Of a DNA stretch of 64,000 nucleotides, positions 15,373 to 33,893 are shown piece by piece. A program made the position numbers and the translations under genes. The DNA lies in the sequence record MT661596.1; one strand, written 5' to 3'. Below the pieces are notes generated by a model. The model had not been told where the DNA came from and made no database searches. It saw only the letters and a program-made list of their open reading frames with translations. The number at the start of each line of letters is the position of its first letter. Position 1 is the stretch's first letter.

Positions 15373-15795
15373 TTAGTGTAACTTTATTTGTTTAACCTGC
15401 TGTAAAGAATGAAGTAAATCATTAACGTATTGTTGTAACGCGTTAAGTTTTCTAGCATTCTTATCAGCCTCCGCCATAGAGTTAATCAAGAATAGACTTG
15501 TGGACACTGGTAACAATACACGCCCATCAACAATTCGTGCAATGTCCGTATCTTTAAGTTCACCAACAACTGGACGATTGAAATGTTCTATCAATTTCTT
15601 TTCGTTGTCTGTCGGTGCCTTCAACATTAATTCTCCGGGTGGTTGCACAGGTGTAAACGCAATCTGCTTAATTACCGGTTCTAGCTTTGTTGTCGGTATC
15701 GGTGGGCAAATGTTTGTATTTACTTGCTTCCCTGATGGGGACTGACAAGCTAAGAGTGCCGTCGATAATAGCATTACGATTATTAGCCGTAGCAA
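15373..15795 (-). CDS. o-spanin (outer-membrane lipoprotein)
   Basis: TTG start with AGGAGG SD 6 nt upstream inside the i-spanin gene; lipobox LLAC; Pro-rich mature region. Confidence 0.85.
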   Translation of the reverse strand: MLRLIIVMLLSTALLACQSPSGKQVNTNICPPIPTTKLEPVIKQIAFTPVQPPGELMLKAPTDNEKKLIEHFNRPVVGELKDTDIARIVDGRVLLPVSTSLFLINSMAEADKNARKLNALQQYVNDLLHSLQQVKQIKLH

Positions 15796-16111
15796 ATTCT
15801 GCCTCCTGGGATTTGAATTGGTACTCTTGACTCAAAGCAGCGGTTAATTGGTTTTGCTTATCGCGTATATCTTCCACAGCTGCATTGAGGGTTTGCATTT
15901 CTACGACTAGACCAGAAAGGTTTCTAATATCATCACCTTGCTTTTCTATAGTAACATGCATCTCCCCAAGCCGTTGACCGTTCTGATGAATTGTGTTAAT
16001 CATCCAATAAACCACTAGTGCTAATAGTAGGTATGGTATAAACCCCACAAACCATTTAAAGAAACGCAATACCGGTGCTGGGAGTGATATCAGCGAGAGT
16101 AATTTACCCAT
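15668..16111 (-). CDS. i-spanin (Rz-like)
   Basis: N-terminal TM, coiled-coil periplasmic part, Rz-type C-terminal NRNAIIDGTLSLSV; 3' end overlaps the o-spanin in another frame. Confidence 0.85.
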   Translation of the reverse strand: MGKLLSLISLPAPVLRFFKWFVGFIPYLLLALVVYWMINTIHQNGQRLGEMHVTIEKQGDDIRNLSGLVVEMQTLNAAVEDIRDKQNQLTAALSQEYQFKSQEAEFATANNRNAIIDGTLSLSVPIREASKYKHLPTDTDNKARTGN

Positions 16112-30635: not shown

Positions 30636-31153
30636 TGATGGACAAACAAAAAGATATTGTAGGTTTTACTAACCTACTACGAAAATTAAAACACGGTCGT
30701 GTCATCACACAGAAACAGGGTATTAAGCTTGCATTGGGTTATAACCTGTCTTCTGGTGTGCGTCGTAATTTAATTCGTAAACTAAATCGAGTTATTCGAC
30801 ATAAAGGTAGCGCTATTGATAACCAGATATTTGGGATGATACGCGCTGGTAACAGAATGCCTATCCTTGCTGGTGATTTCGACGGTGATATGTTACCTGG
30901 TCGTTTCGAAGACCCTGCATTGGCATTATCGAAATCAATTGTTGGCTCGGATATAACACCGGCTGACGCTATCCCTGAACACATCCGCACCAATGTGATG
31001 CAGACCGTGATAGAAAAGTTAGATGCACTACCTGATGCCGTCGACAAGCGTGATGTGGTTGTGGTTGGTGGTGTTCTGTACAGACGTGTTAATGACGGGT
31101 GGAAGGTCATTGATAAGCAAGAGTGGTCTCCAGACGCTTATTACTTCCAGTGA
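30632..31153 (+). CDS. hypothetical protein carrying a DFDGD motif
   Basis: ATGA overlap with upstream gene; AGDFDGDML encoded around 30869-30895. Confidence 0.75.
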   Translation: MMMDKQKDIVGFTNLLRKLKHGRVITQKQGIKLALGYNLSSGVRRNLIRKLNRVIRHKGSAIDNQIFGMIRAGNRMPILAGDFDGDMLPGRFEDPALALSKSIVGSDITPADAIPEHIRTNVMQTVIEKLDALPDAVDKRDVVVVGGVLYRRVNDGWKVIDKQEWSPDAYYFQ

Positions 31154-31209: not shown

Positions 31210-31629
31210 ATGGATTTAGAAAGCATTCACAACCCAATGAAATTATTGGGTCTGTTAATTAACTCTGGAAAAAGCAGTAAATCGTACCATGAAGAGATAA
31301 TCCAATTTCAACCCCAATTCCATCTCGGATTGGTTATGTCTGGTTTTGTTTCCGATATGCTCACCCAAACCATCGCTGCTATAAACAGACATGGGTTATA
31401 CATCCCAGCTACTGTTTATGATTACCGTGTTAAAGTGGCATCTGCACGGTTGGTATCGGTTGCTAAAAACCACAAATCATGTAAATTCACATTACTTGAT
31501 AAGTTTGATGTGGTTGATATCCTACTCGGTGCCGACAACGATTTCACACTTAATCTTTTGAACCAATATCAAAAAGATATGGATGTGGCGATACGAGCTC
31601 ATGGTGTTTATGAATTCCATTTTAAGTAA
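31210..31629 (+). CDS. hypothetical protein
   Basis: 139 aa, AAGGT SD, first gene after early motif. Confidence 0.75.
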   Translation: MDLESIHNPMKLLGLLINSGKSSKSYHEEIIQFQPQFHLGLVMSGFVSDMLTQTIAAINRHGLYIPATVYDYRVKVASARLVSVAKNHKSCKFTLLDKFDVVDILLGADNDFTLNLLNQYQKDMDVAIRAHGVYEFHFK

Positions 31630-31645
31630 CCAACCTACCCACTTA

Positions 31646-32017
31646 ATGGCGGTACTTCACGTACCGTCTTTATGCAGTGGTGTGTCAAAATTCCTTGATA
31701 CAAAAGTAGATTACCCTGGTGACATTAACGAGCTTATGTCACTTGTTTGTATTCTGGTGTCTAGTGATGACTGTACACGAGTCAAGCATATACTTAATAT
31801 GTTAAACAACTTAGATGAGAATCCAGAGTATAATGGTATAACTGAGTACCAACTAAGCAAAATAAGCGATATTGAGAACATCGTTGCTGACCTTGCTGTT
31901 GAAATACAAATTCAACTAGCTTGTATAGACCAAAGACTTACCCAACACCCAAATATCAGTATACTAAGAATACTGAATGACTATCAACATGTTTATGTTA
32001 GTATTACACTAACCTAG
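31646..32017 (+). CDS. hypothetical protein
   Basis: in-frame ATG after the upstream stop; start uncertain (track 31583). Confidence 0.6.
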   Translation: MAVLHVPSLCSGVSKFLDTKVDYPGDINELMSLVCILVSSDDCTRVKHILNMLNNLDENPEYNGITEYQLSKISDIENIVADLAVEIQIQLACIDQRLTQHPNISILRILNDYQHVYVSITLT

Positions 32018-32073
32018 GATAAAACGGTAAATGTCACCTTGTTGTCTGAGGTGTCTATAATGAGGAACATCCA

Positions 32074-32835
32074 ATGAATATCAAGTCCGTTAAAGCGTTT
32101 TTATTAACTGCTGTGTTGTTTATGTTAACGTGTACAGCTAACGCAGCCGTTAAAGAAAACTATTTCCAGAAAGACAACTGGAATAAAAACCGTCACGCGG
32201 TCGTTAAAGGGTCTATTGATTCCAACATCGACCCTATGTTAATGATTAGCTTTGCATCTATGGGGACTCGATTTAACGAGTCGGCAAGAACAAAGATACC
32301 CGGAATGACAGCTGGCGGTCTAGGCGATTTCACAAAAGGGACATTTGATAGTATGGTAAAAGAGTACGGTCATAAATACGGACTAACTCTTGCAAACGCT
32401 GACCGATTCAACCCATATCACGCTTCTGTGATGGCGGGTGAGTACATGAACTGGAATAAACGCTATTTAGAACGTAGACTTAAACGTAATATCACAGACG
32501 GTGAAATCTACATGGCGCACTTCTTAGGTGCAGGTGGTGCTAGTCGTGTTCTTAGAGCGCCTAACAACTCACTAATAACTAACCATATATCAGATGCAGC
32601 ACGCACTAATAACCTCAATATGTTTAAACAAAATGGTCGTATTATGACTGTAGGTCAGTTTAAACAATCCATGGAGAATCGCGTTAATGACCACAAACTT
32701 GCTTATGAAAAACCTGCTAAACAATATATAGCACAATACAAAAGAGAGCAGTACGTAAAGGATTTAAGAAATACTGTGCTTGCTAAACTCGATAACTTCA
32801 CTTCAGGTAAACAATTAATTGCCCTTATTAGCTAA
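32074..32835 (+). CDS. secreted lytic transglycosylase-fold protein (phiKZ gp144 catalytic-domain homologue), catalytic Glu replaced
   Basis: Sec signal (..TANA/AV); FASMGTRF, GLGDFTKGTF, KYGL, YMAHFLGAGGA align with gp144 motifs ASIES, GWFQF, YLAHFFGPG as recalled. Confidence 0.82.
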   Translation: MNIKSVKAFLLTAVLFMLTCTANAAVKENYFQKDNWNKNRHAVVKGSIDSNIDPMLMISFASMGTRFNESARTKIPGMTAGGLGDFTKGTFDSMVKEYGHKYGLTLANADRFNPYHASVMAGEYMNWNKRYLERRLKRNITDGEIYMAHFLGAGGASRVLRAPNNSLITNHISDAARTNNLNMFKQNGRIMTVGQFKQSMENRVNDHKLAYEKPAKQYIAQYKREQYVKDLRNTVLAKLDNFTSGKQLIALIS

Positions 32836-32849
32836 CACACACAACCTTC

Positions 32850-32884
32850 TATAGCCTCAGGGGACGCCCTGAGGTTTATGCCGA
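32850..32884 (+). terminator. stem-loop, TTATGCCG family
   Basis: CCTCAGGG-GACG-CCCTGAGG then TTTATGCCG. Confidence 0.7.
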
Positions 32885-32946
32885 TTTATGTATAATCGGA
32901 AATAATAACCCATTTATATAAACTAATAAACAATAAAGGTGTTCGT

Positions 32947-33432
32947 ATGCAAGTTATTGTAGAACATGGTAATCAGTCACTACAAGCATTAAGTGGTTCT
33001 GATAAAGTTATTGTCAGTGACCTTATGGACAAATATCTCCAGGAACTCTGCAGTCACTGGATACTATCTGGGGAACCTTGGTCATGCGTCACACCAGACC
33101 TAATGGCTGAAGCATTAGAATATATGTACAGCGTACCTCAATTCTATTTACTACGTGATAAATTAAGTAATAAACCAGTTGGATTTATTCTTTACAGTGA
33201 GGACATAACACCATCCAACCACCTGATTGTAGACGTGTGTGAATTTTACATACATGACATCTATCGTGGTAAAGGGTATGGTAGACAACTACTTAGTATG
33301 GTTGTTGAGTACGCACGTAAAAGAGGTGCTATTAGTGTCTCGTTGAATTCCGCTGAATCAAATCCAGCCAATCACTTATACAACACAATTGGTTTCAGAC
33401 CAGTATCCACAAGAAAGGTACTCGCCTTATGA
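32947..33432 (+). CDS. GNAT-family acetyltransferase
   Basis: motif A YRGKGYGRQLL, motif B NPANHLYNTIGF. Confidence 0.88.
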   Translation: MQVIVEHGNQSLQALSGSDKVIVSDLMDKYLQELCSHWILSGEPWSCVTPDLMAEALEYMYSVPQFYLLRDKLSNKPVGFILYSEDITPSNHLIVDVCEFYIHDIYRGKGYGRQLLSMVVEYARKRGAISVSLNSAESNPANHLYNTIGFRPVSTRKVLAL

Positions 33433-33893
33433 AGAACATTATAGTTAAATTACCTAGCAGTAAGGATGAAGCCCAAATTTCTGCTATGACCTTACTTAAT
33501 GACGCGGTGTCATTCCTGTCTAAGCGAGACATCTATATTTATACAGACATGAATGAAGTCCACAATAAAGAACATGCCGAGCCGAATACTCGAACTTACT
33601 ACGCTAGAGTCATTGCTGACTTTATAAGACCGATTGATGCTGCATTGTGGAACGACACCACTACAGTGCAAGTTATTGCGGGGATAACTGGTGGTAACCC
33701 GACGCGCGTTACAGTTGGTGATACAACCTACAGAGCCATCTGTATGACATCAGGTGTAGTTTGGATTGACAAGTATCCTAACGGATTATTCACTGGTGAA
33801 AATGCTAACACGTTAACTATAGACACTTCTGTTAGGCGCTCAAGAGAAGTCGCCCTGTTGCTCGCTAGTATCATCAAATCAATTAATAATTAA
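33429..33893 (+). CDS. hypothetical protein
   Basis: 154 aa, ATGA overlap. Confidence 0.75.
   Translation: MKNIIVKLPSSKDEAQISAMTLLNDAVSFLSKRDIYIYTDMNEVHNKEHAEPNTRTYYARVIADFIRPIDAALWNDTTTVQVIAGITGGNPTRVTVGDTTYRAICMTSGVVWIDKYPNGLFTGENANTLTIDTSVRRSREVALLLASIIKSINN

Follow-up and report, generated by a model that had tools for sequence, protein, structure and literature searches.

Can a phage lytic transglycosylase (LT) that has lost its catalytic Glu still be a useful protein? This question was raised by the open reading frame (ORF) 32074-32835 (+) in the initial 64 kb of the genome of Proteus phage 10 (MT661596.1, 223,209 bp), which formed the window of our analysis; megablast of 31500-33500 matched MT661596.1 with 100% identity at identical coordinates. 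The ORF encoded QMP24020.1, a protein of 253 aa labelled 'putative lytic transglycosylase' in GenBank. Proteus phage 10 was a jumbo phage with the host P. mirabilis that originated from wastewater in Egypt. Its sparsely annotated record resembled those of phiKZ-like jumbo phages in that it encoded an RNA polymerase in split subunits, giant proteins of the virion and a protein like FtsZ. According to our analysis, QMP24020.1 was apparently a catalytically stripped member of the LT family of phiKZ gp144 that had been displaced from the endolysin role. In the literature searched, we found neither this protein nor any phage LT without the Glu described.

The family assignment was consistent across several methods. 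In the phmmer search against PDB sequences (3BKH/9XPS), residues 51-208 of the query were aligned with residues 102-259 of gp144 (E 4e-18). The protein also matched the PHROG family phrog_4067 'transglycosylase' (1e-42) and positions 2015-2205 of the gp181-type phrog_3201 (1.8e-28). The score with Pfam SLT (PF01464) was 16.9 bits, under the gathering cut-off of 21.3. The AlphaFold2 model made from a 41-sequence alignment had a mean predicted local distance difference test (pLDDT) score of 90 and a predicted template modelling (pTM) score of 0.81. Within residues 33-208, the pLDDT per 10-residue block stayed for the most part between 94 and 99 and fell in places to 88, 86 and 76. The signal peptide was modelled as an N-terminal helix, followed by a linker (21-24) with pLDDT below 50. 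Foldseek ranked 3BKH at the top for this model (E 5e-10), followed by MltE, Slt, MltF and MltC. Judging from the model, the lysozyme-like alpha-helical fold of QMP24020.1 was intact. A word-index protein search returned one close cluster together with distant FlgJ/LT-like cellular proteins, and no relative was detected when the protein was scanned against IMG/VR. HMMER produced 892 library matches at E <= 1e-10. Finally, HMMER was run exhaustively against 1.84 billion representative proteins and yielded 3,846 matches, the best 150 of which were aligned in addition to the earlier matches.

The preliminary description of the locus had proposed that Gly64 (GGG at 32263) occupied the position of the catalytic Glu, and that the GxxQF motif read GLGDF. 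Both changes were seen in the phmmer alignment, where gp144 FASIES was placed on FASMGT (Glu115 = Gly64, Ser116 = Thr65) and gp144 GWFQF on GLGDF (Gln134 = Asp85). The further equivalent residues of gp144 and the query were Tyr147 and Tyr98, Glu174 and Glu123, Glu178 and Trp127, Tyr197 and Tyr146, and His200 and His149. Moreover, the centre was altered beyond what had been described, with the additional replacements S116T, E178W, Ser to Met78 and Trp to Phe91.

Such residues were foreign to the rest of the family. Position 64 was Glu in 150/150 other homologues covering the column and Gly only in P0001 and P0004; the gap of P0014 at this position was an alignment artefact, with its NES put there by MAFFT. 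Position 85 was Gln in 145 others (95%), and only the Proteus phage 10 lineage had Asp there, while position 127 was Glu or Asp in 107/157 others and Trp only in this lineage. The query kept 34 of the 50 columns that were at least 70% conserved, and its unique or near-unique misses were clustered in the active-site motifs I and II. Namely, the residues never or almost never seen elsewhere resulted from E64G, S65T, S78M, Q85D and W91F. The retained fold and groove residues were Gly82, Leu83, Phe86, Thr90, Tyr98, Glu123, Asn128, Tyr146, His149 and the AHFLGAGGA stretch. Thus, among the hallmarks of GH23, the catalytic Glu of the Glu-Ser motif and the Gln of G-L-x-Q with its preceding Ser were missing, while the active-site Tyr and His (gp144 Tyr197 and His200) and the AHFLG stretch were present. 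The intact wall-hydrolase or lyase centre expected of an endolysin was absent.

It has been reported that gp144 retained 54% of its activity with E115A and 63% with E178A, and that the double mutant E115A/E178A had none (Chertkov et al., PMC5406664). Therefore, the loss of one Glu alone was a weak argument for inactivity. The catalytic loss in QMP24020.1 was argued from the absence of both the Glu115 and Glu178 equivalents plus four more centre residues. Judging from these alignments, the canonical catalytic centre of QMP24020.1 was lost, and the protein would lack muralytic activity.

The altered centre was shared by the close relatives of the gene. P0004 from a Logan assembly was 93% identical to QMP24020.1 and had the same FASMGT and GLGDF. 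Its DNA, the contig L008, differed from the window gene at 111/762 bases, and only 18 codons were non-synonymous. Codon 64 was GGG in the window and GGA in L008, which encoded Gly in both. The ratio of non-synonymous to synonymous substitution rates (dN/dS, Nei-Gojobori) between the two genes was 0.034, the lowest of the 11 alignable genes in the neighbourhood (0.047-0.138 for the other 10). All ten members of the 90% cluster (93-100% identical) kept Gly64, Asp85, Trp127 and Glu69; they came from NCBI, ENA and Logan, and some were on contigs of ~224 kb from assemblies of P. mirabilis and P. terrae. Logan contigs from four runs of four studies, some of which may be the source sample itself, had zero to four differences over 31900-32950 and none in codons 64 or 85. 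Not one of the close orthologues had Glu, in agreement with the earlier view that the changes were no sequencing error. These comparisons indicated that Gly64, Asp85 and Trp127 were fixed and that the gene was under strong purifying selection. Thus, it combined the enzyme homology, the missing catalytic residues and the purifying selection expected of a pseudoenzyme.

The intergenic regions flanking the gene were 87-91% identical to L008, above the coding sequence (85%), and a terminator-like hairpin was identical. This suggested that the signals used in transcription by the polymerases of the phage itself were conserved. Together with the Gly kept across a synonymous change and the low dN/dS, the conserved flanks argued for a new function instead of decay.

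The N-terminus of QMP24020.1 consisted of MNIKSVK, AFLLTAVLFMLTC and TANA followed by AV, which by inspection looked like a Sec signal peptide, with an n-, an h- and a c-region and an AxA site. Inspection and hydrophobicity were in line with a tripartite signal for signal peptidase I, with K4/K7, a hydrophobic core of 13-15 residues and A22-N-A24 in front of A25. The mean Kyte-Doolittle value across residues 8-22 was 2.18. It was likely that the protein was exported through Sec and cleaved after A24. We also considered a lipoprotein reading of M-L-T-C20, which was rejected since the lipobox was poor (Thr at -1) and a good AxA site was located just after it. The proposal of a periplasmic pseudo-enzyme was partly supported, namely by the loss of the centre, the likely export and the purifying selection, although one lost Glu would have been insufficient given the activity of gp144 E115A. 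The roles suggested with it (shielding of peptidoglycan, a block of superinfection, a decoy for inhibitors, or catalysis by Asp) were hypotheses.

The same description had noted that a signal peptide stood in place of the peptidoglycan-binding domain. This was true in comparison with gp144, but the arrangement was not unique since it was found in a whole subfamily of jumbo phages. The tblastn search detected the domain in 249 phage records, chiefly jumbo phages of Pseudomonas, Erwinia, Salmonella, Aeromonas, Serratia and Klebsiella. It occurred in two settings, namely as the C-terminal part of gp181-like tail proteins of >2000 aa and as free-standing proteins. The free-standing subfamily (~200-280 aa) from enterobacterial jumbo phages aligned with QMP24020.1 from the first residues, and all its other members had the Glu. 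These short homologues aligned across the N-terminal region and had a hydrophobic start and an [AS]-x-A motif in common. Therefore, the signal-peptide architecture was ancestral to a clade and not peculiar to Proteus phage 10. The C-terminal extension was also common to the subfamily, with varying length and sequence. Erwinia phage Simmy50 gp30 (SIES, GLTQF) was located in the same neighbourhood as QMP24020.1, downstream of SbcC, which spoke for orthology. Serratia phage PCH45 had a similar protein (QFP93147; SIET, GLFQF), and Moabite gp016 and others were annotated as endolysin. A quick tree of 48 homologues, with 21 open forks and a stem length of 1.39, did not fix the branching point of the Gly64 clade.

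We searched five related jumbo phages (Simmy50, PCH45, SA002, Moabite and PA7) for other wall enzymes and found no M15_4, GH24 or Amidase_2. GH19 was present only within a giant virion protein, in Simmy50 and SA002. Thus, the gp144-type LT was the sole free-standing wall enzyme of these phages among the searched families. Since M15, GH24 and Amidase_2 were not found there, the signal-peptide LT was probably the endolysin of the related enterobacterial jumbo phages.

Proteus phage 10 had a different set of wall-lysis genes. In the six-frame Pfam search of its whole record, SLT was found only at the QMP24020.1 gene, and there was no GH24, Amidase_2, M23 or NlpC/P60, with GH25, GH108, Amidase_3 and CHAP left unsearched. 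GH19 was found solely inside the gp181-like tail protein. Namely, the gp181 homologue of 2033 aa at genome positions 82396-88500 (-) (L010:32396-38500) had a chitinase-like GH19 domain at ~residues 1630-1840 instead of the LT domain. The same swap from LT to GH19 was observed in Erwinia Simmy50 and Salmonella SA002. We proposed that the GH19 domain of this giant tail protein would perform wall penetration at entry.

A candidate for the lysis step was located outside the window. QMP24096, annotated as a hypothetical protein, scored 42.9 bits with Peptidase_M15_4 (cut-off 25) and matched several PHROG endolysin families. It aligned with the L-Ala-D-Glu peptidase domain of the Listeria phage endolysin Ply500 (2VO9) and with 8Q2G. 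Its His73, Asp80, Asp119 and His122 fell on the His, Asp, Asp and His columns of Ply500, which we take to be the Zn ligands and the catalytic base. The nearest phage relatives of QMP24096 (55-58% identity) were annotated as endolysin or M15 peptidase and adjoined holins. They were not from jumbo phages and belonged to ~30-kb phages of Escherichia, Cronobacter, Yersinia and Salmonella as well as Pseudomonas PaMx-type phages. The QMP24096 gene overlapped the end of the virion RNA polymerase beta-subunit gene by 8 nt. According to these matches, QMP24096 was likely the true endolysin of phage 10.

The need for such an enzyme was also implied by a putative spanin pair, which pointed to a canonical multigene lysis route needing an endolysin. 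QMP24007 (15668-16111, -) had an N-terminal transmembrane segment and weak Rz-like PHROG matches. The overlapping ORF 15373-15795 (-) began with MLRLIIVMLLSTALLAC, a lipoprotein signal with the lipobox LLAC as expected of an o-spanin. GenBank marked only 15373-15627 of this putative o-spanin ORF, leaving out the lipoprotein signal. Divergent from the spanins was QMP24005 (14953-15312, +; 119 aa), a candidate holin with one long hydrophobic segment (~residues 22-47) and PHROG matches that were all of unknown function.

With slightly better than even confidence, we favoured the view that QMP24020.1 was a displaced former endolysin kept as a non-catalytic periplasmic peptidoglycan-binding protein. 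The ancestral endolysin of the clade would have been a Sec-exported LT. A small enterobacterial phage was the probable source from which the Proteus lineage would have gained the M15 peptidase, and QMP24096 would most likely perform the wall-degrading step of lysis in the phage 10 lineage. The LT would then have lost its catalytic centre (Glu to Gly64, Ser to Thr65, Ser to Met78, Gln to Asp85, Trp to Phe91 and Glu/Asp to Trp127), while the gene itself was retained. After cleavage of the signal peptide, QMP24020.1 may bind glycan strands or muropeptides in the periplasm without cutting them. This non-hydrolytic binding was the most likely activity, given that QMP24020.1 had kept its fold, its basic charge and the majority of its non-catalytic groove residues. 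The binding could serve a fitness-relevant role in wall integrity or lysis modulation, or in the access of other wall-active proteins.

A possible selective background was the peptidoglycan of the host. It has been reported that LTs require a free C6-OH of N-acetylmuramic acid (MurNAc) (PMC1199599). O-acetylation was listed for Proteus and not for E. coli and P. aeruginosa (Table 1 in PMC6174289). Since LTs need the free C6-OH, O-acetylation of the MurNAc C6 in Proteus would block them, whereas a peptidase would be indifferent to it. Taken together, the analysis established the homology, the fold, the residue changes with their fixation, the purifying selection and the presence of M15 and GH19 domains. 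We infer that QMP24020.1 is exported and cleaved, is inactive, binds glycan, was displaced as endolysin and has a physiological purpose.

Several points weighed against this view. The argument from O-acetylation rested on one lineage, and lysozyme-type endolysins occur in other Proteus phages. The 54% activity of gp144 E115A meant that losing the canonical Glu had less effect in this family than would be expected. In addition, the lineage-specific Asp85 and Glu69, located in or near the active-site motifs, could in principle serve as a substitute acid. The inactivity of QMP24020.1 and its peptidoglycan binding were both inferred from the sequence, and the residue counts were based on the best 150 of 3,846 homologues. 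The search for wall hydrolases covered nine Pfam families in phage 10 and a smaller number in its relatives. Finally, QMP24096 was not beside a holin or the spanins but amid virion and RNA polymerase genes, and it could be a virion protein instead of an endolysin.

A first alternative, considered unlikely, was that QMP24020.1 was still muralytic, as the main or a second enzyme, with a rebuilt site where Asp85 or Glu69 protonated the glycosidic bond. Such a protein might be a hydrolase that did not need the MurNAc C6-OH and tolerated the O-acetylated Proteus peptidoglycan. The very strong selection on the gene fitted this possibility, as did Asp85 and Glu69, which did not vary within the lineage and were seldom or never found outside it, the residual activity of gp144 E115A, and the orthologues that were likely endolysins of related phages. 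However, the equivalent of Glu178 was lost as well, and the gp144 double mutant was dead. Six conserved centre positions were changed together, and a separate M15 endolysin candidate existed. Moreover, we know of no lysozyme-fold enzyme that works without the Glu at the helix end.

It was rather unlikely that QMP24020.1 had been selected for binding to proteins instead of glycans, a possibility that overlapped with its role as a peptidoglycan-binding former endolysin. It might act as a Spackle-like periplasmic decoy or inhibitor of the wall-active enzymes of superinfecting phages, or as a decoy titrating host lysozyme/LT inhibitors or LT partners. It might also be a regulatory subunit of the phage's own peptidase, similar to alpha-lactalbumin or the dead LytM factors EnvC and NlpD. 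The predicted periplasmic location was compatible with all of these, and the long helical C-terminal extension of the subfamily could mediate protein contacts. Since the catalytic orthologues had this extension too, it was independent of the catalytic loss. Regulators that are dead enzymes have well-known examples. Among them, the LytM factor DipM is reported to bind LTs (PMC10336132). On the other hand, no partner of QMP24020.1 was identified, and the conserved groove residues fitted glycan binding.

We regarded as quite improbable a more specific version of glycan binding, where the exported QMP24020.1 would act as a 'reader' of peptidoglycan that had a remodelled -1 subsite and recognised O-acetylated Proteus glycan strands or muropeptides. 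The removal of Glu, Ser, Gln and Trp may have made room for 6-O-acetyl-MurNAc. The protein could then have a phage function of a new kind at the level of the envelope, where it might for example pre-position or activate the M15 peptidase at lysis, exclude superinfecting phages at wall penetration, or sequester wall fragments that signal damage. Finally, a sequencing or assembly error, or a freshly inactivated gene drifting to loss, had a negligible probability because, although GAG to GGG is one base, ten NCBI, ENA and Logan sequences and the contigs of four runs agreed, codon 64 differed synonymously, and dN/dS was 0.034 over 111 substitutions.

The surroundings of the gene were not those of an endolysin gene. 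There was no lysis cassette around it, and the linkage to holin and spanins was absent, with the spanin pair 16 kb away. The neighbours at 31210-32017 and 32947-33893 had no transmembrane segments and no lysis matches, and no family matches except a GNAT acetyltransferase. This acetyltransferase (32947-33432; Pfam Acetyltransf_1, 9e-13) was directly downstream of the LT-like gene and 60% identical to the L008 copy. In Simmy50, a GNAT gene was likewise located a few genes downstream of the LT orthologue. Two other genes of the region differed from L008. The 'radical SAM-like' protein with a DFDGD motif (30638-31153) had ~34% identity to its positional counterpart in an ungapped comparison, while the neighbouring genes had 77-93%, and it was either fast-evolving or replaced. 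QMP24025 (35527-36087) was not in L008, where the offset between the flanking orthologues shifted by 566 bp, corresponding to a one-gene accessory indel. The coordinates of the relevant features are listed in Table 1.

Table 1. Features of the QMP24020.1 gene and of the other putative lysis genes of Proteus phage 10 (window positions unless marked as genome)
Feature	Position	Strand	Basis or remark
Spanin pair (putative)	15373-16111	-	Transmembrane segment, PHROG, lipobox
Upstream intergenic region with ribosome-binding site GAGGA (32062-32066)	32018..32073	+	Presumed own promoter region; no promoter identified; 91% identical to relative L008
Signal peptide (predicted), aa 1-24; n: K4, K7; h: 8-20; c: T-A-N-A; predicted cut A24/A25	32074..32145	+	Read by eye and hydrophobicity
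Predicted mature protein, 229 aa, ~26 kDa, isoelectric point ~9.9, no Cys, like orthologues	32146..32832	+	Computed
gp144/GH23-type lysozyme-like (LT) fold (predicted), aa 33-208	32170..32697	+	phmmer, AlphaFold2, Foldseek, PHROG
Codon 64, GGG = Gly at the position of gp144 catalytic Glu115	32263..32265	+	Alignment; GGA in relative
Codon 78, Met; Ser in 79% of family (S-x-A-x-G-L-x-Q stretch)	32305..32307	+	Met in 0/143 others
Codon 85, GAT = Asp at Gln of GLxQF motif (gp144 Gln134)	32326..32328	+	Alignment
Codon 91, Phe; Trp in 97% of family	32344..32346	+	Column conservation
Codon 127, Trp at gp144 Glu178 ('second-site' Glu)	32452..32454	+	phmmer alignment
C-terminal extension past the end of gp144: long helix 193-241 prolonged and short terminal helix	32698..32832	+	AlphaFold2, alignment
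Terminator-like hairpin CCTCAGGG-GACG-CCCTGAGG, then TTTATGCC	32855..32882	+	Read from sequence; identical in L008
QMP24096, 131-aa 'hypothetical protein', M15_4 L-Ala-D-Glu peptidase (predicted)	Genome 94790-95185 (L010:44790-45185), outside window	+	Pfam

To our knowledge, wall-regulating or wall-reading pseudoenzymes are familiar from bacteria and animals but have hardly been described in phages. QMP24020.1 can be considered a natural experiment, since its orthologue was apparently an endolysin in related phages, yet here it was catalytically stripped and the most constrained gene of its neighbourhood. If its role were worked out, a periplasmic function new to nucleus-forming jumbo phages could come to light. 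The case would also show a route of endolysin replacement and test O-acetylated peptidoglycan as a driver of the choice of lysis enzyme. For an enzybiotic against Proteus derived from phage 10, the sensible candidate would be the M15 peptidase and not the annotated 'transglycosylase'.

Among the known systems, phiKZ gp144 (3BKH/3BKV) had the same catalytic-domain fold, and its Tyr147, Tyr197 and His200 were kept as Tyr98, Tyr146 and His149. In contrast, its Glu115, Gln134 and Glu178 corresponded to Gly, Asp and Trp. Moreover, gp144 had an N-terminal peptidoglycan-binding domain where QMP24020.1 had a signal peptide, and it lacked a signal peptide and depended on a holin. It was an experimentally established endolysin of the phiKZ type, and its gene shared a lysis cassette with those of the holin and spanins (PMC12894885), while the QMP24020.1 gene was without a cassette. 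The gp144 protein was also found in the phiKZ neck (9XPS). The LT domain of the phiKZ gp181 type (phrog_3201) was homologous as well, but it was part of a virion tail protein of >2000 aa.

The same architecture was that of the signal-peptide LTs (Simmy50 gp30 and those of other Agricanvirus, PCH45 QFP93147, Moabite gp016 and Salmonella SA002), which had a signal peptide with AxA, an LT domain and a C-terminal extension. Their length (219-260 aa against 253) and basic isoelectric point were alike, and they were 32-37% identical to QMP24020.1. However, all of them kept the Glu-Ser motif and most of them GLxQ, and QMP24020.1 had neither.

A comparable location is known for T4 Spackle (Sp), a superinfection exclusion protein that is exported to the periplasm by a signal peptide and binds the incoming gp5 lysozyme. 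Both proteins were thus known or predicted to be periplasmic at the peptidoglycan step. However, the folds were unrelated, and Spackle was not derived from a lysin. Finally, the LytM factors EnvC, NlpD and DipM, the non-catalytic peptidoglycan recognition proteins and alpha-lactalbumin differed from QMP24020.1 in fold or organism; none was a phage GH23, and their new functions were known experimentally, whereas that of QMP24020.1 was proposed. What they had in common with it was the path taken, where the fold was kept, the catalytic residues were lost, and the resulting protein was maintained by selection.

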